Shown here in pieces: positions 8,126-31,000 of a stretch of 64,000 nucleotides of DNA. Every line of letters starts with the position of its first letter. Position 1 is the stretch's first letter. A program made the position numbers and the translations under genes. Origin of the DNA: Thalia democratica (lineage: Eukaryota); NCBI GenBank assembly GCA_965202585.1, contig OZ241828.1:61628001-61692000 (forward strand), written 5' to 3'. Below the pieces are notes generated by a model that saw only the letters and a program-made list of their open reading frames with translations, did no database searches and was not told the DNA's origin.

Positions 8126-8272
8126 GAGTTGCGTTCCTGTGTCTGAGGTGGCAGAACACGGCGTTGAGTATGAGCAAGCCGATGCAGACGGGAACGCCGA
8201 TCAGTATCAACCAGATGTAGTTTATCTGCAGCCCTCCCTCAATCCCCGGGTTCTGGTTCGGTGGCGGGCGCT
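8126..8272 (-). CDS. FGFR: FGFR transmembrane exon (ERPPPNQNPGIEGGLQINYIWLILIGVPVCIGLLILNAVFCHLRHRNAT)
   Basis: 147 nt, phase 1-1, cag| acceptor, C|GTTAGT donor. About 23 hydrophobic residues followed by a basic stop-transfer sequence (LRHR). Confidence 0.9.
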
Positions 8273-10275
8273 CTGTTTGTTTGTTTATTTATTTTAATTC
8301 TAGTTATATTTGTTGAATTTTAAACGAACGGGTAAATCTTCATACAGCAGGTCTTAAATCTTTCAGTTAGTGAATTATCTTTTAAAGAGTATTTTGAAAG
8401 ATTTTTATAAACTTTAAGTTATTTTGAAAATATATATGGGTTTGGATATACCAACTATGTTTACACTTATAATTCTGGGATGTGTTATTTAAAAAATAGG
8501 TTTAGATTTAATAAAACTTTTGTTTTTTGAGTTATAAGAAACCCATACTAATTTCTAGCAATTTTAGTTATGTTGACGCAAAAACACTTGAACATTAAAT
8601 TTTATTGATTAATCGGTTTTTAAACACTTTTTTTTTTGTTTAAATATTAAAAACAGGAAGTGTAAGCTTTTAAAACCATATCACACAACAAAATATTGAT
8701 GATTCAAACAAAGTTGGTTAGAAATCCTTAAAATTCGACATAAAACTTATCGTTGTATTTGATACAAAATATGTTGGGTTTACACCTAAACAGTTTTCTA
8801 ATGGCCTTTTAACAGTAAAAATTGTAACTTAAAATTGTAATTTCGATAGCCAAAACAAGACTCAGGGGTAAAATAATGTCTTTATTATTTGATGCTAAAC
8901 AAAACTTAAATTTGAAAATCTTATGAATCAAAACAAATAGACATTACCAATCGTTTTAGTTTAAAATAAGTAAGTGGGAGTAAAATACTTTTGACTAAAT
9001 ACAAAACATACCAGAGTACAACTGCTTTGTGTTTTTGCAAATTAATCAACTTCGACAATTAATGCAATTTAGAGAGGGTGTGACCAAAAGGTCGTAGCAA
9101 AAACAACAATTAGAGTAAAAGGTCAACAATTATGTTGTATAAACGACAAAATTATGTTCTTTAGTGCACTGATACACATTATTTATTGGTGTAATCATGT
9201 TTTTATTACAAGGAATTGACTGTTGATCCCAATAAATCATTCCGAGTGTTTAATTTTGTAATTTAGTTGTAAAAATGACAAAACTATGTGTTATGGCTTT
9301 ATAAAAACACAATAATGTTGTAAAAAGACAAAATTTCCCATTAACGTTATTTAAATGTTGTAAAGTTGTTTTTACACAACTGCTATTATGTTGTTTTCCA
9401 ATAAATCATTTTGAATTATTTTAACGGCCCTTGTTTAATTGAACTAACCCCTTATAATACAGGAACAAACAACAAGTACAATGTTGCATTTGTCTTAATT
9501 AGTGTGTTTAGGCTGGATAATAGCTTCAATTTATCATAAGGTTTTTATGATTACAAATGCTTAGTTTGCTGACAGGTTTTGTCAGACTGTTTCTATAACA
9601 AAACCACACTTTAACATTTTCTTGTATTTAACACTTCAGATGATTAATGATTAATTATACTTTGTATCAGTTAGGTACTCTTACAAACTTATTTAAGCAT
9701 TTTATTTTAAATAAAAAGATTTAAGACTGCTGTATACAAGTTTTAATTAAGAAGAGTTGTAATAATACTTAACAAGTTTTTATAAATAATTTAGTATAAA
9801 GCCACCAATCACAAAATGATTAACACCAGAAAATTAATCACCAAAAAAAGTAGATGCAAATTAAGTTAGATGAAATATTTCTACTGAATCAAGAACCACT
9901 GAAACTTTTGTGTATCTGATTTTACACTGATGATTTGAACTGCTATAACAACGAGTTCAAAAAGTCAAAGTTTATCTATAACTTTAGCCAATTTAAATAA
10001 TAATTATTCGATAGAATTATGCTTATAAAGAGTAAAATTTCTTTTAATGTAGCCCTTTATACCAAAGTTTTACTCTGTTTTATTCAAAATGATAAAAAAC
10101 CTTTAAACTGAAACATAACCTATATTAAATACCTAAAAAATTCCCATAAAACCCATGACCTTAAATGATTCAACTTGCTTATATCTTAAAAAAAATCAAA
10201 TTTTCTCAGATTTATTTCCAAAAAATTCAATAAGTTATTCAGTTTCAGCGGTTCACAACTCCCTACTGATATTAC

Positions 10276-10417
10276 CTCTGACGTAAACCCTGGCAACTAT
10301 CTCGTTGGAGCCGATCGAGTTGCCAGCGTTGCAAGCGTACTTGCCCTCATCTTCCATCGTCACGTTGTTCAGTTCCAACTGCTGCAAGTCCTTGTCGGTC
10401 GAGTTCAGCCCCGCTTT
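10276..10417 (-). CDS. FGFR: FGFR IgIII second-half exon b2, IIIc-like ([47 protein letters not shown])
   Basis: Close to vertebrate IIIc (AGVNTTDKE..L.L.NV..EDAGEYTCLAGNSIG). 142 nt, phase 0-1, tag| acceptor, G|GTAATA donor. Not in the ORF track because it has no start codon. Confidence 0.93.
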
Positions 10418-12151
10418 CTATTGTGACGTAATAAACACCTCGGTTAGTCACATGCATTGTATTATTACACCAGTTTTTATTTAAATTTACACCAATTATT
10501 TATTTATTTACACCAACTTATGTTTAGATTTATTTAAAAGGTATCACCAGTAAAAGCTAAGCTATAATAAGTTCAGCACCAATCTAAAAGTTTTGCTAAT
10601 AAATTTAAATATGCTACAGTAGCTAAGTTCACCAACATAACTATTTAATGCTAAAGCCACCAAGAAAAAGAAGCAAAAATTAATAAGCATAAAACACCAG
10701 AAAAAAGTAAAAAAGCGCAGTAAGTAAAAAGGATAAATTGTTAAAATATACTACCACCAAAAAATTGAAGTAAAATTTAAAAATATCTAAAACAATTGTG
10801 GGTAAAAGATTTGTTTACTATGAAAAAACTACATTAAGTTATTTCAAATCTCAGTTATTTTTGCCAACAAAACTTTAAACAAAGCAATTTAATAAATTCT
10901 CGTGTTATACAACAATTTGCAGATAAAAACAACCGCTGCTTCCGAAAGTTGATAGAAAATTGCGGATATTAAGATAAGAGGAATTTACAAAATGAAATTG
11001 CTCGCTTTTTTATACTTTCAAAATGCTGCTTATTAAGTTATACGGGTTTAAGTTTGAAGGAATTTTCAGCTTCTCATGTGTGTATTAAGTATTTTGCGTA
11101 CTTTAAGAGCATTAACTTTTATTGCTCTTGTGTATTAAGTTCAATACTTAAATATAAGAGCACATCTTGAATATTTTGAGTTTCTTATTTCATTTATTGT
11201 AAGACTTTTTTAAATTGCAACAAAAGTTATTTGAGGACAACCATAAAGACTTTAAAAGAACGTTTAAAAATTTTTCATAGTCAAAAGCTTATACTGTTCT
11301 TTTTTAACCTTTATATAACCATTTTATGTAAGTTTTTGCAACGCATTGTAAATACACAATTTCAAAAAGGTAACACTAAAGCAGATTAAACTTTGAGACT
11401 TCAAACCTTTTTGTGCAAGAAAAAACAGCATTGTTTTCAATAAAACTTTGTGCTTTGCAATTTGAGTTTTCTTTAACAAAACTATAATAAACAGCATTTA
11501 AAACAAAGCAAACAATTTTAGTCATGCAAAAAAAAAATTAACATTTTTTCAACATGGTTATTTTAAATTGGATGTTTAATATGAAATTTTGAGATTAAAT
11601 ACTTTAAAAAGTGTAAACAAAGCTTTGTAAAACTTTTGCACGGAATACAAGTAGAAATTTGGGGAAACCAAATTTTTATTTGAGATGAGATTTAGATAAA
11701 AAGCACGCTAAGCATTTAAATCCACCAAAAATATTTAAAAACTACAAAAAGCCACCATAAGTTAAAAAACACCACGCTACTTCTACATATATTAGAAAAA
11801 TTAATTGTTTTTAATGTTAGTTTGCCACCAGTGCTTTCATTTTCTTTTTCTTCTTTTTTCCAACATGCTTCAGTTTTGCTCGACAATTTATCAGGTTTTT
11901 CAGAAATATTTACATAAAAACTAAATTAAGAGTTACTTAAAATTAATATAAAACGATCTCGTTAGATAACATGCTTAAAATTTTGCCACCCAATCTTCTC
12001 GAAAACTTTTTTATTTATAAAGAAACGCGTGATTAGCCACCGAGTTACTTCTTGAATCTGAGTGTTAATTTATATATGAAAGCCACCATGTTCATCCTAG
12101 GAGAGGATTTTCACCAGGATTAGTTTTCAATTTTTGCCACCACATTCGCAC
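10418..12151 (-). promoter_or_regulatory. Intronic splicing-regulatory region between b1 and b2 (UGGUG clusters, UGCAUG)
   Basis: 16 CACCA on + (UGGUG in the pre-mRNA), clustered at 10468-10759 and 11723-12142. CATGCA at 10451 and 11523. Confidence 0.7.
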
Positions 12152-12293
12152 CTAACACGGTGATGGTGAAGTAGTGGTCCCGCCTCCCGTTCTTGTTGTG
12201 GGCGGTGACCGCGTACAGCCCCGTGTCTTCCAAGGTGGCGTTCACGATCGTCAGGCTCATCATGTCGCGCGTGGGCAGCATCAGGTCGAAGTC
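12152..12293 (-). CDS. FGFR: Alternative IgIII second-half exon b1, lacking the F-strand Cys (DFDLMLPTRDMMSLTIVNATLEDTGLYAVTAHNKNGRRDHYFTITVL)
   Basis: 142 nt, phase 0-1, cag| acceptor, G|GTGCGA donor. Aligns without gaps to b2 (14/47 identical). Confidence 0.82.
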
Positions 12294-13699
12294 CTGTGAC
12301 GTCATGATCGCGCGTGCACACGTCATAGTTGTTCGAGTGACGTCAGAGTGGGTTATGTGAAAGTTTTGCAAGTGAGTTATTTGTTAAAATTGTCCTTTTT
12401 TCAGTAATATAAATACATAAAAATACTAGACTTAAAAAACTCTTACTTTAAAAAATTTTTTAAATAAGTATTCAAAGTCTACTGAAAAATTATTTTGACA
12501 AAAAGGTGCAATGTGTGTAAAAATTTTAAGATTGTTTAAATGCTTACTTTGAAATTTTTTAAAGTTAAACATTAAAATGTTATTATAAAATATACAGAAT
12601 ATATAAAAAATTATTTATCTATAAGATTTAAAAACAATCAAAAAACAATTAAATATTTTATAAACATAAATAGTTAACTAACTTTATATATTTAGAGCTT
12701 AGTAAACACCACATGAATGGTTATTATTTCTAAAAAGTATAAATATTTTAAATAAAAAATGCATGAACTATTTTAGCTTGCTTTTGGATGACACCCGTTT
12801 TCAAATTTAATGAGAGCACCATAAAAAAATTTTAATTTAAATATTTACGTTAAATTTACTATTGAAAATCTATTATACGCGGCATAACAAACACGTATAT
12901 TTATTTGATTCAAATAAATATATTCAACGAAATTGGCATGCAAACATAACATAAACATTAATGCTTTTTTTTCCATAACTTGCAAAGAAATTTTTTCATT
13001 AGATTTAGCTTTTGTAAATTGCAAAAGTTTTTTGTTAATTAGTAAATTAAAACTTTAAATTAAATTGAAACAGAAAATTTCTAATGCAAAAAATCTAGCG
13101 ATTAATTTGAACTTTGATAAATTAATAAAAACTATTTAACTGCAGGTACAAAACTTGCTTTAAGTTTCAGTAAAAATGTTTTTAGTCTTTTAATTAAATA
13201 CAATTTTTACAGCATTTTTTGCAATTAAATCTATCTATTTAATTGCAGTTTCATACAAAAGAAATTAAACACTTTGCTTTTATTTGACGATTTTTGCATG
13301 CTAAATTTTCAGTTCATTCTTACTGAAACTATGAACAAGTTTGTCAGTAAAAACTCCAGTGTGATAACGAATGATGAATGTGAAACATGAAAACAAGCGA
13401 CGAGTTTAAGCAATGATATCAACGAAATAAAGCACCAAATTTACATGAAACAATGCAGAAGTAGCAAAGAAATGTTCAATGAAAGTACAAGCTGTATACT
13501 GATGTAAAGCTTAAATATAATGTAATAAAAAACATAAAAACGAATGAAACATTCAACAAAATGAAATTGCGTACAATAAATTACAATCAAAATACAAAAA
13601 AAATGCACAAAAAACCACACATGAACAAATCTAAATAAAAACAAGCTGTATTAAATATACACCCAGCACACGCATTTAAATATTGGCAGCAACTGCATG

Positions 13700-13795
13700 T
13701 GCACACAGGAAATCTGCCATCAAAGCCGACGAAAAATTGATTGCTTCGTGTTTAAGTTCGGGCGTGAGTCGGCCGCTTTGATGTTTGTTTACGGC
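13700..13795. promoter_or_regulatory. Candidate TCF/Fox/ETS enhancer
   Basis: CAGGAAAT at 13706, ATCAAAG at 13719, CTTTGATGT at 13776, TGTTTAC at 13786, in a CpG-rich patch. Confidence 0.4.
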
Positions 13796-16317
13796 GAAAA
13801 TTCGAGGTGAAAACTTCAAAGGCGAAATTTTTGCTGCCCTAAATCTTCTAAAGAGAAAAATTTCGAAGCGGAAAAAAAGTAAATTGCTTTTAATTACGCC
13901 GATTTATCATGCGAAAGTTTTTAAACGTTGGTTGGATAAAAAGTCTTTAATGTTTTATTTCGTATGTAAAGGAATTGTCTTTTTAGTGACTCGGTTATTG
14001 TTTGAGCTGTGTTCACTTACCTAAAGTTTTTATAAGAATAGTTTTGACTTATTTTTGTTTAGATCTAAAAATAAAACGTAAAAAATCCTCATTATTTCTT
14101 TTTAACTTTTTTAAGGTATTTGAAAACAAACTTTTGCAAATTTGAGGTAAAATGAAATTACGAGTTCCTAAATTAATTGATTTTTTGATAAAACTAAAAG
14201 TCGTATAAAAATAATTTTTATCGTGAAACAAACACCGCGAAAAATTCCGACCTTTTTAAACTGACAACAATTCCAGTGAACTTTTTTTTGTGAACTTACT
14301 TTAAACTTTAAATGAGCAATTTTTAATGTCACAACTTTTAAGACAATGCAGTTGTTTCATATGTAATATGTCAGCTGTCCTATATTTAAATGTGTGTGCT
14401 AGATAACATTATGTACATTTATACAGTGGAACGATTGCACGTTTGAATGAAACGAAAATCAAATGAAATTGTAAAAAATCAAACGTTTCATAACAAAACA
14501 TCTTTTTTTTGAAACAAAGATGTTTTTGTACGAAATTCAAAAAAAATGTTCAAACCAAAAAAGAAAAATATCCTCAATCAAAGTTTGACACTGAATTTTT
14601 TTTTATTTACGGCGAGAAACTGTTCCCACAGTTTTACAAAACATGACGTAAACTGAAAACAATAAAGTTTTTATGCCTGAAACTCTCATTTCTGAACTTA
14701 AAACCTTTTTTGTGTCATTTCAATGGGTTGAATTAAAACTTAAGGACAAATATCGCATGAAGATATTAGGTTTCTTTGTTAAAAGGAACAAAAAAACATT
14801 TTACTCTAAATTCACTTTTTTGTCTTCGGTTGACTCTTTAACGATTTAAATCGGAACAATAATTTCCTTTGAGTATTAATTTCTGCATCAAATTTTGAGT
14901 AAGGCTAACATACGTTGAAAATGCAATAAAAAATTGAAAATAAAGAAATTTTTGCAAAACACAATAAATTTCAATGCGACAAAAAGCCCAACACCAAATT
15001 CAAACAAGTCCTCTCAAACTAAAACACAGCAATCAAGTAAAAAATTGAGAGGTTGTAGTATATGTGTGAAATAAATGCTGAAACTCACATATAAAACAGG
15101 GTCGTCAGAGACTTGCTGTAATAGAAAAAATTAAAGTTAGACAATTATTTAAACACAATATACAAAGTAGAAAAACACAACAAATTGATTAAAACTTGAA
15201 GAATTAATGATTAGGTTTGAATTTCATAGACTTTAAGTAAATAATAATAATAAATAATTGCTTCATAGTTTTTGTTGTATCAAAAAGAATTTTTTAAATA
15301 CAACTGCAATAAAAATTAACAGAAAGAAAGTAACAAAGATAATTTATAAGTACTTTACACATTGTATAGCAACATTTGAAAATATTTTTTTTATTTGCAA
15401 ACTTATCTAAAATTTGGCCAAAAGTTACTACTAGACTAGACTTGTATTGATAATAGTTTGACTATTTTAAGCTTTTTAAAACTTGGCTAATTAAGTTTTA
15501 ATATTCCTAGATTTTAAATCAACTAATAGAGTAATCTTCAATATTGTAAGAAAAAGAGAAAGAAATCCACGTAATTAAAAGTTTAAGTAGATAAAAATTA
15601 TTTATTTGTACCAAAAAAATCACTTAATTACATGTAACTGAAATTTAAAATGAAAAAATTCAAAAATATTAAAGAAAACTATTTAAATGATTTTAAAAAT
15701 TATTCTTTTTAGAAGATGTACTCATAGTTTAACTATTATCTAACATAAAAGCAGAATATTTATAATTTAAATTTTGTAAATTTAGTAAAATGCTTAAACT
15801 TTATGATAAGTTTATATCTAGTTATCAACAATATAGTTCTAAACAATGCAAACTTCATAGACAAAAACTAAAACGTAAGTTCAAAACAAAAGACTCTTAA
15901 TTTTAAAAACTTGTACAAAAATCCTTTACTAGCTACAAATACAAGTTTAATTAGACAATGTTAGAAACTGTGTTTTGTTTTGAATTTAGGTCGAAGCTTT
16001 TGTCCAGCAGTTTACCAACAAAAGTTATCTATTTATTCGTGTAAATAAATAGCTCAGATTGCAACAATAAAAAAGTTTATTTCAATGCGGTTTCTAGTTC
16101 TTTGACTTTTTACACAAAAAAAGCAGAAACCTTCTGAAAACTCAGACCTTGAAACGGCCTAAAAACAGTACTTGGGCTAAAACAACTAAAAGTAACCTTA
16201 AGATGGTAACCTTAAGGTACCAAAGTCTTCAAAAGATCTCTGCTTTTCACCAATGCAACAAAGAAACCGCACCAACGAATAAACTTTCGCACACCCCAAC
16301 AACGCAAAAGTACCCAC

Positions 16318-16565
16318 GTAAATCTTGTATCTGGGGTCGACCGACTCAAAGTTCTCGCCCACCAGCCACCGGTACCTCCCGTCGGGCGGGTCCTCCCTGC
16401 TGCTGACCTCGGGCTCGTCCATGGACCGGTACACCTTCCAGTTGACGTCCGGGTGGAGGGTGGTCACTATCAAGCACTTGAGCGTTAGCGTCTCCCCCAC
16501 GTGGACCGTCACGTTGTCCATGCCCTCGTGCCCCCAGTATATCACCGGGCTGCTGTGGTGGCGCT
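16318..16565 (-). CDS. FGFR: Alternative IgIII first-half exon a2 (ERHHSSPVIYWGHEGMDNVTVHVGETLTLKCLIVTTLHPDVNWKVYRSMDE...DPRYKIY)
   Basis: GC-rich ORF homologous to a1 (ER..P(I/V)..N.T..VG....C.....HP...WK.Y.SM.E). tag| acceptor at phase 1. Most likely donor is |GTGGGT at phase 0 (248 nt); a weaker phase-1 GT lies 4 nt further. Confidence 0.8.
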
Positions 16566-17792
16566 CTATGTGGGGAACGATACAACAACATGTTAGTAAG
16601 GAGAAAATATTGATTGTTAATAATCAAAATAATATTAACGCCACAAATCAATGGTTTTTTTTAAGACATCACTCATAGAAGGTTTTGTGGTGATTCTAGT
16701 TTATGGGGGTTCTAATACAATTGCTAAAACATGTTTACCAGGTAAAGAATAAAAATATAAGTCAAAGTTAGTGTTGACAATTCATGGAAGTAAGAATACA
16801 GTCAAGTAGTGTAAAACTAAATGTTTTTAAAATCATAAAGAAAATTTATAGTAGTTTATCAATAAAAAAGTTTTTAAAAGTATGATAAAAAAATAACTTT
16901 GACAAAAAAAATTATGTTTTTATAATAAGATTTAGTATTTGAAATTTAAAAACAGTTATGATGGATGTAGACAGAAAATACAACTTATTGCAACAATAAC
17001 AATAGAATAATACTTTAGATAAACAGAAATAAATAATTATTATTGTAGGTAATTACAATTTAATTGGACTTTCCTGGCAACACTTTAATTGTTGCTTTAG
17101 TATTTTTATAACCATAATGATTAATAACCCAGAAAGATACTGTTATTGAAACAAAAACAATAGTCGATATAATAAGAAGAAACAATAATCAAAATTATGT
17201 CTGTGTTAATTTACAGACTTTATATAAGAGCAAAGGAAAGTATATAAGGAATGATCAGACAAAGATTTTTGTCATTTTTCTATTAATTATCGAGTGTACC
17301 TGCAATTAAGAATAAATTATTTGGTTAGATGAGAGTTAGCATGCAGTGACTATTGTGACGTAATAACAACGGAAAAATGATGACACCAATGAATGCTAAA
17401 ATGTTTAAGTGTGTGTGAAACTTGCTTTATGAATTTTTGTTCCTTGGTGTATGAAAAAATAAATTGAAACTCTTTTGTTTTAATTAAAAAAAAATTAAAA
17501 CATTTTGAATGGTATTTAAAAAATCATTAAAAAGTGTTGGTTGGTCATTAATTTTTATGTGTATTTTTAATAGTAGTCAACATTAAATCACAAAATGGAT
17601 TAGAAAACAATCAAAAAAAGTATATAAAAACTTTTTATTTTATACACCAAATCACAACAAAACGAGCACATGAACGTTTTTTAGTATGCATTATGACAAA
17701 GTGCGCTTTCCAGCCCATTGTGAATCATGACACTACTACTTATTAATATTTCCCGCGCTTTTTTACAAATTTTCCCGCGCTTTTTTTCACAC

Positions 17793-17971
17793 CTTGACGG
17801 TCTTGTAGTTGTCGCTTCCTCTCGTCTCGTTCATGGAGTCGTACTTCTTCCAGTATATGTACGGGTGGGCGTCGCTGAACACTTTGCACTCTATCGTGTA
17901 GTTGTCCCCCACGTACAACGTCTTGTTCTCGGGCGTGGTGAAATGCAGGATGGGTCGGTAGTTCGATCGCT
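17793..17971 (-). CDS. FGFR: FGFR IgIII first-half exon a1, IIIa-like (ERSNYRPILHFTTPENKTLYVGDNYTIECKVFSDAHPYIYWKKYDSMNETRGSDNYKTVK)
   Basis: Hand translation of the reverse strand resembles FGFR ERSPHRPIL...CKVYSDxQPHIQW. 179 nt, phase 1-0, tag| acceptor, AAG|GTGTGA donor. Confidence 0.93.
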
Positions 17972-20900
17972 CTATTGTTACGTCATAGTTGTTTACTTAC
18001 ACGCTTACGTCATAGGTTAAAAAATATATAAAACAGGGTCTCCTAGATGTTAGTTATCTATAGTTTTATGACTCCTGACTTTTATAGGAGCTCTAAACAT
18101 TAGACATCTCTACTAAGTCATATTTCTATAAAATTTGAGGAATAAACTATATGAGTGTTATGGTTCTTCTGAGCTGTTATATAAATATTTGACTTTTACT
18201 AGCACGTAAAACAATTGTACTTTTTACATGCAGGAAAACACCTTCAACAGGGTTTAATATTGTTTAAATTTTTGTCATACTTAAAGTAGAAAAACCATGT
18301 AATATACTTTTTAATTATAAAGTTAGGTCATAAAGATGGACAAAAAACATATTTTTTTTCCTTTTCCATTAAATCATGTAAAGGGTGCTTGGGCTTTAAG
18401 AATATTTTAAGCAACCCAAAACAAAGTTCTTTTGTTAACTAATCTCAACTTGAAACTTAAAATCTTTGCAAATATTTAGTCGGATTTACTGCAGATTACA
18501 ACCATTCAAAAACGTTAAATTAAAATATTTCAGCTCATAAAACGAATACCGTGGATATATTAAGAAGATTTATAGATTTATTAAAAGAAGTAGCTTAAAT
18601 TTTGACGTATAAACTATTTATATGAAATTATACCGTTTTAAAAATGATAGCCTATCATTGTATCTTTTAGTTCTGAATGTCTCAACTTAAAGAGATAAAT
18701 TTTGGTATTTGAAGCAGAAAGGTTATTTTAAATACTTTTTTAAAGAATAAATTCAGAATTTTTTTAAAACTTTAATAAATAACGTATAGCTATTACATAT
18801 GTACTTCTTATTTTTGTGAGCTACAGTGACACAGCTTAATTTATACAAACTTCCATGCTTAGAAGTTAAAAGTGTAACCTTATAGTCGGAAGAGCTATAT
18901 ATACATTCTTATAAACAACAAGTGTGTACAACAAGAATATATATATCAGTTTAAAACTGATGAGTAATGCAACTAAAAAGCGGGGAAATACGCAAGTAAA
19001 ACCAACAACCTTTCTTAACCTTTTTACAAGCGCTCACAAGCATTTAAGTGCAGATCACAAGCGGAAAGACCAACGTAATCTCAGTGTCCTTTATGTAAAC
19101 TTTGTTTTCAAACTACACTTTACAAAACTTTAGCTCATACTGACACGCGTGCAAAAGCCTAATTCAAGTTGATAATGTGCAATTTAAAATCCTAAACACA
19201 AAAAACGCGCGCATTAAAACCCAATAATTTAAACTTTAAAACTTCTGAGAAATTTCGGGCAAATTACGTAATTTCCTACCAGCAAGTTGACAAAAGTTGA
19301 AATTTTTATTTTTAGACCTTTTTGTTGTCGGGCGCGAAAATCACAAAAACCGCCTTTCCGCTCCGAATTATGACGTAACACTCGAAAAGCGCCGAAGCGT
19401 GAACGGAGGTCGGTGCCGGGTCATTCGAGTGATTATTACGTCATAGAAGTTTCGTGGGTAAATCTCGAACGGATGCGCGACCTTTTGTGCTAGAAAACTT
19501 TGTTTGTGTTTTTCCGATTTCGCGCTTTTAATTGCAATTGTGACGTCACAATTGTGATTGTCACCTGCTGCAAGTTTTCTCATCAGAATTTTTTTTTGTT
19601 TACACTTAAAATCTTGCTGTGTTTGTGGGAAAATAAAACCAAGAAACAACTTTTAAAAAATTGTTTTGAAATGAAATTAAAACCAAATAAAAATTTTGAA
19701 TTCAGTAAAGTTGACAATTTAACGGCCATAAATTAACAGTACGAAATATTTTAGTGATGTGCACAATCAGATAGATTTTGTCATTAAACGCTTAACCGAA
19801 AAAAAATGTTTAAAAATACTTTTTTTGCTAACTTGTTTTGCTCGAGACACTTAAAAATTTGCGTAATTTTCTGATAATTTCCTTAGTTTATATTTTAAAA
19901 AATTTCGAATGTTTTTTACGCAATTACAAAGATTTTATCAGAAGTTGACGCCGTAAGTACGCATCAGAAATATCCGATTTGCAAAAAAAAACCTGAAATG
20001 TTTTATCAGGACGGTTAAATTGCTACCTTTTTTTGGGAGTTTCTTTTTAAAACAATAATGAACCATCTTTAAAAACTTAGCCGTATCCTAACAATAACAT
20101 ATTTTATTAATTTTCATCGCTCAAAAAGCTTAGAAAGCTACAAGCAAAACAATAACTTATTTTTACCGCCGGCGCATTTCAAACGTTGCACGAAACACTG
20201 AAATTTTCACCGGTGAAAAAGAGAAGCAACAGCAAGTTTGATAATTACTCAAACTCATTTTCAAATCAGCATAATACACATTTGCACGTTCGAGATTGCG
20301 GCAAGCCGCGAGAAACCAGAAAAGTTTCCGGAAATATTTTGAGGTTGTGGCGGTGGAGATTGTATTTGTTGGGAAAGCGTGCCTGGTACTGCCGAAATTG
20401 GAGACTGGTACCACATATATATATATATTCGTGTGAGTGGCGATATTGTAAATTGTTTATTAATAACTCGTCTGTTTAATTATTTTTATAAGTATTAGGC
20501 GTATCGCAGATAGTTTATTGAAAGTTCCTTATAAAAAACAGTTAGTTTAAAGGCTTTTTGTTTTTTTCTATACGGATACTTTTCACCATTTAATTTTAAA
20601 CGTTTATACACCTGGAGAAATATGTGCATCTACTAGCACAGAGTTTTGTATTAGTTTAACTTACATTCTTATCAAGATAGCTGATTGTAGCGCAAACTAT
20701 TTATTAGTATAACTTGTAAAAATGGAAACACATTCAAAGGTCTGACAGCACAATAGGTTTTTATGATTTAAAATTATTTTTTATAGAGTTGTGGTAACAT
20801 TGACGCGTTAGATATAAAAATAAACTTAAACAGAGTTATATAAAGTACCATGGAAATTTTTGATCAGCTTAAAAGAGTATATTTAGTTACTTTTGTAATT

Positions 20901-27884: not shown

Positions 27885-28008
27885 CTGTGACGTCTAACTC
27901 GTAGGTGTGGCTGATGGTTTTCAGGTGGTTGCTGATCTGGCAGGTGTACTTTCCGACGTCTCCCAGAATCACCTGCTGCAGCGTCATCACCTGCTTGTCG
28001 TGACGAAA
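27885..28008 (-). CDS. FGFR: FGFR IgII second-half exon (FRHDKQVMTLQQVILGDVGKYTCQISNHLKTISHTYELDVT)
   Basis: D-x-G-x-Y-T-C and the FGFR HTY-x-LDV motif. 124 nt, phase 0-1, cag| acceptor, G|GTAC donor. Confidence 0.95.
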
Positions 28009-31000
28009 CTGTTTGGAGAAAGTTGTTTTTGAGAATATTCTAATTGATTTATGCAATTGAAGTTAGAATTGAAAATATTGGAATTTAAACTAATTAATCA
28101 AAGTTACGTATGTCAAGTTGAGATTCATCAGCCTAATAAACGAAGTATTTATTTTGCTTGTAATAGTTCAACTGTTTAGCTTATTTTAGTTTTACACATT
28201 TAAAATTTTTAGCAAAACCAGTTATAAAACTTTTGTTAAAACTTATGTAAACTAACTCTTCATTAGATCAAGCATAAAATTTTAATCAAAAAAATAGTTT
28301 TAAGCTTAGTCTTGCTCTTTAAAATGAAATATTTTTCTTCAAACCATGTACATCAAGGCACTTAAGTGCAAGTCAAATACTTATCTCCAAACAGAACTTA
28401 ATAATAAGAAAAATATTTAAACAAGTTTCAAAACTAGTTTCAACTTTCAAACTTTGTAAACCTTTTAACTGGTTGTTGAAACAAAAATTTCGTAACTTAA
28501 CTTATTTTTATACAAATAAAAGTTTAATTAGTCGCCTTAATCTTCAAGTTAGTTTACGTTCAAAGTGCTTAAAATTTTAATTACCCCTATTAAAAACTTC
28601 ACGAAAATATTAACTTACACTAACGACTAACTAGTACATAAACAACAAATTAATAAAAAATTTATCACTTATTAAAACCTGTTATCAGTACATCAAAAGC
28701 AAGTTCAAACCAATACTAAACCATTTTAAGTTTTTTAACAAGTTGTTTTTAAATTGCTTTTTACTGGCAGAATTAACTAAAACTTAAATACTTTTAGAAA
28801 AACAATTACTTTTAAAACAACAACTATTTTTTAACTTGATGATTAAACACCAACAAATCTAAATCATCAATAACTTGCGTAAATTTGTAAACTCAAAACC
28901 AAACACACATCGGCTTAGCAGTTGAACTTTTAATTTCAGACAAATATTCAATTACTTAAACAATTAGTAATGGAGTTGAATGTACTGCCGATTTGATTAA
29001 CAACGTTTCACGCAGTTTACGTTTGAAACAAATTCAAATTGAAACTTTACACCTGGGTAAACTGGATTAATTTGAATGATGAGCAAACTAACCCAGCACT
29101 TAAAACGTCAAAAGATTTTAATAAACACACCAATTGCAGCTAGTTAAATATAATGGATCGCCCAAACAAACATCTAAAAAGAAAAATCAAGAAACAAGAA
29201 GCTTATAAATTATTCTTTAAATGACAAAAAATTGTAAACAGCTAAGTAAATAGAACTGCACTACTTTTTTCAAATTACATTAGCTTTTAATCAAACGTGT
29301 CCTACATATCAATTTTTTCTGCTTAATTATAATAAACAAACAACTTTGTTCAATTAAAAACGTCAACGGAAGTTAAACAAAACACACCTGAACTAATAAG
29401 TTTTGAACAAACAAAAAAGGGAAATAAATTTGTTTAACAGGAAACAATCAACAAACATTTTATGATCTTAAAAAGCACAAAAAGGAAAAAAAATAAGAAG
29501 GCAGTTTAATGGTTAAACATTAAACTCAAAACAGTGTTTGCTTTATTTCAAAAACAAAATTGAAAATATTTGTTCTATCAAGCAAACATAAATCACCAGT
29601 TTATTAAATTACGAAACTTTCGCACAAGTCTTAAGGTTTAAACCCGAGAAAATAATTTAATTATTTCGAATTAACTCGCGCCTCAGCGAGGTTAATTAAA
29701 AACTCGGTTGGGCACCTGTGCGCGGAATTAAGTTTCAGCGAGTTGCCATGATAGCTAACGAGCTGGTTTTGGCGGGAAAACTTTCAACGAAATTCGCAAT
29801 AAACACCGCGTTAGCCCAACTTAACGTCGCAGCGCCTTGATGTCTGGGAGCGAAGTTAATGAGTTTGCAATAAATCTCAATGTTCGGCCCCAACTTGAAC
29901 ACTTTTGTAATTTGAACTGAGAGATTTCAACGTAGAGCTTATGGTACTTGAAGTATTGAAGCTATGTTCTTTTTCAAGTGTTTTATTTCGCACTAAACTT
30001 TTTCAACTGTGAGTTTTTGGACCTTGACTCATTTTTATATAAACTAGCCTACGAAAAATAGGCGTTAGAGGATGTAACAATTGACAAGTTTTTCATGCAC
30101 AAAAACATAATTTTCTAAATTATTTGAAATCGCATCTTGTAATTAGAACCGGAAAAACAAATCCATCAATTTAGACTTTAATTTGTTTCTAAAATCTCAC
30201 GAATACATAAAGCATGAGTTTCTCCTGCTTATTTCCGAAAAAAAATTAATAATTAATTGCAAACCCAATAAGCGTACAAGACACATTTTCTAATTTTCCC
30301 AGATGACCCGTGTAGTAAACTGCAATCACTAACAAAATTATAATGTCAGAAAATTTCCGCTCTTAATTTGAAACCTTACACCCTGAAACGTTCGCAGGAA
30401 GCCATAAAAAATTAATTTATACTTTTTAAACGTGGAGCAATATCCGTTTTAAGGTGAATTTGAAAAATAGTTGAAAAAACCTGAGTTGCAGATTTTGATG
30501 AGTGATAGCAAGAAAAATATTTGGATGGGTATCAAGAAAATTTGTGAAAATAAATAAATTACGTATAGATTCTTATAGATAAAAGTTTCAATTGCACTTA
30601 ACTAAAAAAAATAGAAATAGTTGCAAAACCACCAAATCTAACTTGTAACTCAACACTCGGTAACGTTTTCAGGAAATTGTACAAAAGTTAATTTATCCGC
30701 TAATTGTTCTGCCATTTCCGCTATTTGCTCGATTAAAAGCGAAATAAAAACTTTTAATCAAATTACTTCAACGGCCACAAATACTAAATTCTATATAAAA
30801 CTCAAAATTTCTGCATTAGTGCGCCATACTCAACTGTCATTCAACTTCAATATAAAGTGAAAAGACGTTTAACACAATTTAAAAATTATACTGGGCTAAA
30901 GTTTTAATTTAATGAATGTAACTTATACTTATGGGAACAGTTTCAAGCTAGGCACAACTTCGGGTTGTTTGAAATTACTGCCATTAATAAGTGCATAAAA

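Follow-up and report, generated by a model that had tools for sequence, protein, structure and literature searches.

In vertebrates, the specificity of the fibroblast growth factor (FGF) receptors is changed by swapping one half of the third immunoglobulin (Ig) domain, IgIII, and the switch between the exons IIIb and IIIc involves GGU-rich Esrp sites. Tunicates, the sister group of the vertebrates, have a single FGF receptor (FGFR). Here we describe the IgIII-encoding part of the FGFR gene of the salp Thalia democratica, located in a stretch of 64,000 nucleotides (GenBank assembly GCA_965202585.1, contig OZ241828.1, positions 61,628,001 to 61,692,000 of the forward strand) which is termed the window in the following and from whose first letter positions are counted. 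An earlier note, made from the sequence alone, had proposed that both halves of this domain have alternative exons, a1 and a2 for the N-terminal half (the IIIa position) and b1 and b2 for the C-terminal half, which could be combined in a two-by-two manner so that the whole IgIII domain is swapped.

The FGFR locus

The gene lies on the minus strand, and its exons form GC-rich islands in AT-rich animal DNA (Table 1). IgII is encoded by exons upstream of a1, and the kinase exons map downstream in the gene, just past the start of the window. Residues 165-391 of the spliced protein P0008 (see below) can be aligned with domains D2-D3 of FGFR1 (1EVT) over 218 residues (E 4.6e-37), and the same transcript encodes one transmembrane helix and, C-terminal to it, a tyrosine kinase domain (Pfam PK_Tyr_Ser-Thr) in open reading frames (ORFs) of 850 or 871 amino acids. 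FGFRL1 was considered as an alternative identity and was ruled out since a kinase domain and IIIc motifs are present. A search of the 802-Mb assembly with an IgII-IgIII query located the FGFR gene at one locus, and this locus is the single FGF receptor gene of the salp. A copy of the exon for the N-terminal half of IgII, 97% identical, is present on a small unplaced contig (C186:8414-8587) and is probably not a second FGFR but an uncollapsed haplotype.

Table 1 Exons and intronic elements of the IgIII region. X1 and X6 are metatranscriptome runs; P numbers denote spliced proteins, L numbers cDNA contigs or, for L001, a metagenome scaffold
Feature	Position	Strand	Evidence or remark
IgII C-terminal half exon, constitutive donor for a1 or a2	27885-28010	minus	ends in GACGTCACAG followed by gt; cDNA contigs L008-L011
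Exon a1, canonical IIIa, N-terminal IgIII half, 179 nt	17971-17793	minus	FGFR1 D3 match; in a1b2 and a1b1 mRNAs
Tandem 22-nt element directly after a1 donor	17749-17792	minus	nearly invariant in second species
Block of about 130 nt in a1-a2 intron, about 95% identical between species	17250-17400	minus	interspecies alignment
Exon a2, alternative IIIa, 248 nt	16565-16318	minus	X1 contig; mRNAs P0008/L009 (full) and P0002/L008 (truncated); Tara scaffold L001
Exon b1, alternative C-terminal half in IIIb position, 142 nt	12293-12152	minus	X1/X6 joint; a1b1 mRNAs P0009 and P0010
UGGUG/GGUGG cluster just downstream of b1 (7 UGGUG)	11727-12142	minus	motif count
UGGUG cluster just upstream of b2 (9 UGGUG), with UGCAUG at 10456	10472-10759	minus	motif count
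Site complementary to a1-donor element, about 270-310 nt upstream of b2	10684-10728	minus	candidate RNA bridge
Exon b2, canonical IIIc-like C-terminal half, 142 nt	10417-10276	minus	FGFR match; 30/30 nt of X1 loose end
Transmembrane exon, common acceptor after b1 or b2	8126-8272	minus	RNA loose end and cDNA mapping

Two pairs of alternative exons

Each of the four exons is flanked by an AG acceptor and a GT donor and contains a single open frame, with the borders, lengths and phases that the earlier note had given. The lengths leave a remainder of 2 (a1, a2) or 1 (b1, b2) after division by three, and only frame 2 is open in the a exons and only frame 0 in the b exons. Because the lengths are not multiples of three, inclusion of both members of a pair or of neither shifts the frame into early stops: joining a1 to a2 or b1 to b2, or skipping a pair, leads to a stop within about 25 codons (in frame 0 of a2 and frame 2 of b2). 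Each pair is mutually exclusive at the protein level by these frame rules, as had been predicted from the phases. In the mRNAs, either b1 or b2 was found, never both and never neither.

In comparisons with PDB, a1 matched the N-terminal half of IgIII of FGFR1-4 (FGFR1 D3, E 1e-9) and b2 the IIIc half of FGFR3, FGFR2 and FGFR1 (E 2e-13), and a1b2 is indeed the canonical IIIa plus IIIc domain. The proposed homology of a1 and a2 was borne out by BLASTP (15 of 39 residues identical, E 4e-10), and the two exons share the lineage-specific stretch H-P...W-K-x-Y-x-S-M-x-E. Exon a2 encodes 23 residues more than a1, two near its start and 21 in a loop past the W-K-x-Y-x-S-M motif, and it retrieved generic Ig domains only from PDB. 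As a1 is the sole other match of a2 in the whole 802-Mb genome, a2 appears to be a tandem duplicate of IIIa. A search of 1.84 billion protein representatives, among which isoforms are collapsed, gave no a2-like sequence outside salps. The salp gene has the feature of the insect-type IIIa switch, namely two homologous tandem exons for the N-terminal half of which one is used per mRNA, and we infer that a2 is a lineage-specific copy which arose independently of, but analogously to, the insect one.

Exons b1 and b2 have the same length and can be aligned without gaps, as had been noted (12 of 31 residues identical, E 2e-7). In b1, valine occupies the position at which every FGFR has the second disulfide cysteine, there is no cysteine in the entire exon, and the AG-N-T-D-K start common to IIIb and IIIc is missing. 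In four RNA runs the valine codon (12207-12209, minus strand) varies only synonymously between GTC and GTG, and valine is also present in a second species; the lack of the cysteine is therefore conserved and not an assembly error. A word-index protein search with b1 gave no match, a scan of JGI metagenomes gave only unrelated Ig-like matches with 35-40% identity, and a search of the salp's own genome gave no link from b1 to b2.

Transcripts and isoforms

X1 and X6, two marine metatranscriptome runs of the same sample, provided contigs which were aligned to positions 12060-18040. Exon b2 is located outside this interval, so that the a1>b2 and a2>b2 junctions are represented there only by loose ends or by inference. 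In both runs, the a1 donor is connected to the b1 acceptor by a joint 12292>17792, the CT..AC ends of which correspond to GT..AG on the minus strand. A 304-nt contig of X1 comprises the last 24 nt of the IgII exon, the whole of a2 and a further 30 nt which are identical to the first 30 nt of b2 (30/30). The end of the IgII exon is also joined to a1 in RNA contigs, its last bases being carried by loose ends at 17973 and 16567 (X1/X6), and the loose end of an RNA contig shows b1 spliced to the transmembrane exon at 8272. Of eight predicted junctions, five were seen in this way (27885>17971, 27885>16565, 17793>12293, 16318>10417 and 12152>8272). An alternative a2 donor at 16314, which would change the phase, was ruled out since the X1 contig and the cDNAs use the donor at 16318, as originally proposed. 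In X1, a1 had a contig depth of about 218, a2 of 79 and a1>b1 of 55. Because the depth of a1 exceeds that of a1>b1 and the depth of the intron next to a1 is near zero, most a1 transcripts in X1 seem to continue to b2, with contig depths being a poor measure.

A profile search with a2 in the 1.84 billion proteins led to a spliced product of 484 amino acids, and cluster look-ups and a further search added the others, so that four JGI samples yielded seven spliced FGFR proteins, the cDNAs of which map on the window with exact exon borders. Six of them belong to a second species (79-97% exon identity to the window): a1b2 is represented by a full-length protein of 850 amino acids (P0011) and two short ones of 461 (P0012, P0013), a1b1 by a full-length protein of 850 (P0009) and a short one of 461 (P0010), and a2b2 by a short one of 484 (P0002). 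The seventh (P0008), from a lineage close to the window (93-98%), is a full-length a2b2 protein of 871 amino acids with the kinase. Complete ORFs are thus available for a1b2, a1b1 and a2b2 across two related species, and each of these three IgIII versions passes the Pfam I-set threshold as one Ig domain. The combination a2b1 was found in no RNA contig and in none of the seven spliced proteins; these come from few bulk samples, and absence from contigs is no proof.

The short proteins result from an alternative terminal exon after the transmembrane exon (6447-6083, minus strand, stop codon 6319-6317), by which kinase-less, membrane-anchored receptors of 461 or 484 amino acids with a 43-residue tail are formed. 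They occur with a1b2, a1b1 and a2b2 and in at least three JGI samples (P0002, P0010, P0012, P0013), and they could serve as decoy or dominant-negative receptors. All cDNA contigs furthermore contain, after the first Ig exon and before the IgII exon, a microexon of about 18 nt which was not aligned by BLAST and was placed via exact 12-mers at about 36713-36696 (minus strand).

Conservation and selection

The ratio of nonsynonymous to synonymous substitution rates (dN/dS) between the window and the second species was 0.08-0.10 for a1, 0.13 for a2, 0.14 for b1 and 0.015 for b2, and the amino acid sequence of b2 is identical in all relatives. On a Tara metagenome scaffold of the second species (L001), the order and spacing of a1 and a2 are as in the window, and a2 has the same length of 248 nt, the same splice sites and no indel at 77% identity. 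Neither a2 nor b1 contains indels or stops at 77-79% nucleotide identity, and the differences in b1 among the four RNA runs are almost all synonymous. Although a2 and b1 evolve faster than the canonical a1 and b2, the low dN/dS (about 0.13) and the synonymous changes in b1 show that both are functional coding sequence. The earlier note had named unspliced or degenerate a2 and b1 as a possible outcome; both exons were found to be spliced and under purifying selection.

Intronic elements

The intron between b1 and b2 (1734 nt) contains 16 UGGUG motifs in sense orientation, compared to about 0.8 expected and a maximum of six in 2000 shuffles, and nine sense GGUGG motifs, whereas neither motif occurs in antisense. 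The motifs are grouped in two clusters, one beside b1 and one beside b2 (Table 1), which as predicted sites fit an Esrp-regulated choice between b1 and b2. No known code is evident for the choice between a1 and a2.

The tandem 22-nt element behind the a1 donor and its complementary site upstream of b2 are reciprocal best partners in a comparison of about 2000 windows, with duplex energies of -36 to -39 kcal/mol (z -5.1 and -6.2). Hypothetically, pairing of this kind would place a2 and b1 in a loop and promote the use of a1b2. A competing selector for a2, as would belong to docking/selector pairing of the Dscam type, was not found, and the intron downstream of a2 has no outlier duplex partner. 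In a general scan for long-range duplexes, GC-rich exon-exon pairs dominate, the meaning of which is not clear. In the conserved block of the a1-a2 intron, 17 nt of the b2 acceptor are repeated exactly (17366-17350), followed by 50 nt with a UGCAUG and then by CAG/GUAC. Both this block and the tandem 22-nt element are more conserved than exon a2. RNA over 17170-17475 consists of unspliced, low-depth contigs only, and the block could be a decoy or poison exon.

The a2-b1 intron has a further GC-rich island (13640-13840, minus strand), which is single-copy and covered by RNA at a low level. Among the duplex partners of the a1-donor element it ranks second, and it can pair with the 3' end of a2 as well. 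It was rejected as a further exon or a repeat, being single-copy, lacking an Ig-like frame and occurring in no cDNA. Rfam searches over 10000-18200 gave nothing meaningful and no match for this island. The motif ACGTCAC, which forms the core of the palindrome TGACGTCA, is found 18 times in sense and 11 times in antisense orientation in the 64 kb, compared to about two estimated from base composition, for example at 27893, 17983, 17361, 12302 and 10429 (minus strand). Copies are located at the IgII donor and directly before the acceptors of a1 (with one mismatch), b1 and b2.

Proposed model and alternative explanations

We regard it as very likely that two adjacent mutually exclusive exon pairs build the IgIII domain of the single salp FGFR and that the versions a1b2, a1b1 and a2b2 are made. 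In this model, one of a1 and a2 would supply the N-terminal half and one of b1 and b2 the C-terminal half of the domain, and an Esrp-type factor would bind the UGGUG clusters between b1 and b2 and steer a choice of the IIIb/IIIc type. Exon a2 would enlarge the loop of the N-terminal half, b1 would replace the segment that sets specificity in vertebrates, leaving the cysteine of a1 unpaired in a1b1, and a2 and b1 would be combined rarely or never. By precedent from vertebrates and Tribolium, the three IgIII domains may differ in FGF binding, and one gene would probably make several receptors with different ligand preferences. Some points weigh against this model. All RNA consists of assembled metatranscriptome contigs of wild relatives that are 79-98% identical to the window; a1>b2 is directly documented in the second species and, in the window-like lineage, only by depths and contig ends; b1 and its two-species profile match generic Ig halves such as those of contactin and titin, FGFR chains following with E 0.03 or worse; and AlphaFold2 predictions from four-row alignments reached predicted local distance difference test (pLDDT) values of only 45 for a2b2 and 41 for a1b1, the a2 insertion not being placeable.

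The two-by-two scheme of the earlier note stands in so far as each half of IgIII has a real, spliced and conserved alternative exon, but three of the up to four isoforms were seen and the alternative exons occurred in mixed domains only. Independent choices, with a2b1 as a fourth, whole-domain-swapped receptor made in a tissue or stage missed by bulk plankton RNA, are permitted by the phases and by an open, Ig-like translation of a2 plus b1, and the RNA is a handful of bulk samples. We nevertheless consider this rather doubtful, since sample 3300018695 contains both a1b1 and a2b2 and yet no a2b1, and since the contigs of X1 connect a2 directly with b2 and b1 directly with a1; under independence, the depths there would predict a2>b1 at about 15x, a suggestive figure only, given the poor measure. 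Conversely, a strict coupling of the two switches with exactly three receptors would mean that the a1-donor element pairs across 7 kb with the site upstream of b2 and sets a1b2 as the default, that Esrp-type factors bound to the UGGUG clusters divert a1 to b1, that a2 is used only with b2, and that the disulfide-less a1b1 dimerises covalently or is relaxed in ligand choice; in this full form it appears unlikely. That a2 and b1 reflect noise in splicing or errors of assembly and have no function of their own might be argued from their being minority forms in X1, from the failure of a2 to be assembled in X6 and from their faster evolution, but this view is close to refuted by precise junctions in five samples and two species, full-length ORFs including the kinase, the selection described above and the retention of valine at the cysteine position through synonymous changes.

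Concerning the origin of b1, we think that it is probably a strongly diverged chordate IIIb exon and b1/b2 the IIIb/IIIc switch, for which position, size, phase and intron motifs argue rather than sequence. It might instead be a tunicate- or thaliacean-specific duplicate of a IIIb/IIIc-type exon, or a recruited exon, with the UGGUG clusters gained separately. This less favoured but quite conceivable origin would account for the better matches to contactin, titin and other generic Ig halves than to any FGFR, for the missing AG-N-T-D-K start and cysteine and for the lack of a link to b2 in the own-genome search. It fits less well with the length, phase and gap-free alignment shared with b2, with the location upstream of a IIIc-like exon as in vertebrates, with the crowding of Esrp-type motifs in the b1-b2 intron and with the dating of the duplication before the chordate split (PMC5703972).

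Comparison with known FGFR switches

The IIIb/IIIc duplication and its control by Esrp, which was shown in amphioxus and vertebrates, predate the chordate split, whereas all studied non-chordates have a single constitutive IIIb/IIIc exon (Burguera et al., PMC5703972). Like the salp, vertebrates and amphioxus have two tandem exons for the C-terminal half which are not multiples of three, of which one is used per mRNA and between which GGU/UGG-type motifs are dense, and the salp b2 is clearly IIIc-like. Vertebrates and amphioxus, however, switch IIIb/IIIc only, whereas the salp gene has a second mutually exclusive pair directly upstream, and its b1 lacks both a recognisable IIIb sequence and the disulfide cysteine. 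Mutually exclusive IIIa exons exist in the insects Tribolium and Apis and are called insect-specific in the literature (Sharma 2015, pmid 25864412; PMC5703972, Fig. 7 legend). The N-terminal half is encoded by two tandem exons in insects as in the salp, the salp pair presumably being an independent duplication. Other lineage-specific exons occur in sea urchin, acorn worm, oyster and amphioxus, and the region has been termed a hotspot of recurrent alternative splicing (PMC5703972). The amphioxus IIIx and the extra ambulacrarian exon resemble a2 in being lineage-specific alternative exons of the same intron region; however, the sea urchin exon is dissimilar to its neighbours and IIIx is found together with IIIc and not in place of IIIa, whereas a2 is a homologous replacement for IIIa. 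As in Cys342 mutants of FGFR2 (Crouzon/Pfeiffer), the first IgIII cysteine of a1b1 has no partner, but Cys342 is affected by mutation and a1b1 is a conserved, regulated splice form. One may conjecture that a1b1 dimerises covalently.

Full-text literature searches retrieved no account of a gene in which both IgIII halves are switched and none of a salp FGFR. The claim that this architecture is undescribed seems to hold for the combination in one chordate gene but not for its parts, as the IIIa switch of insects and the IIIb/IIIc switch of chordates are each known. What looks new is that both switches are combined in one chordate FGFR with three IgIII versions, one of which lacks the disulfide.

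Biological meaning

The locus adds a chordate case to the idea of a hotspot of alternative splicing in this region and provides a tractable system with two neighbouring mutually exclusive choices, which are seemingly not freely combined. Its mixed domains are natural chimeras by which it might be mapped which half of IgIII reads which ligand and, if the reading with strictly coupled switches is true, cysteine mutations of the Crouzon type would have a physiological counterpart in a1b1. By swapping either half of IgIII and dropping the disulfide in one form, the single gene of the salp would serve several FGF ligands in a manner of its own.

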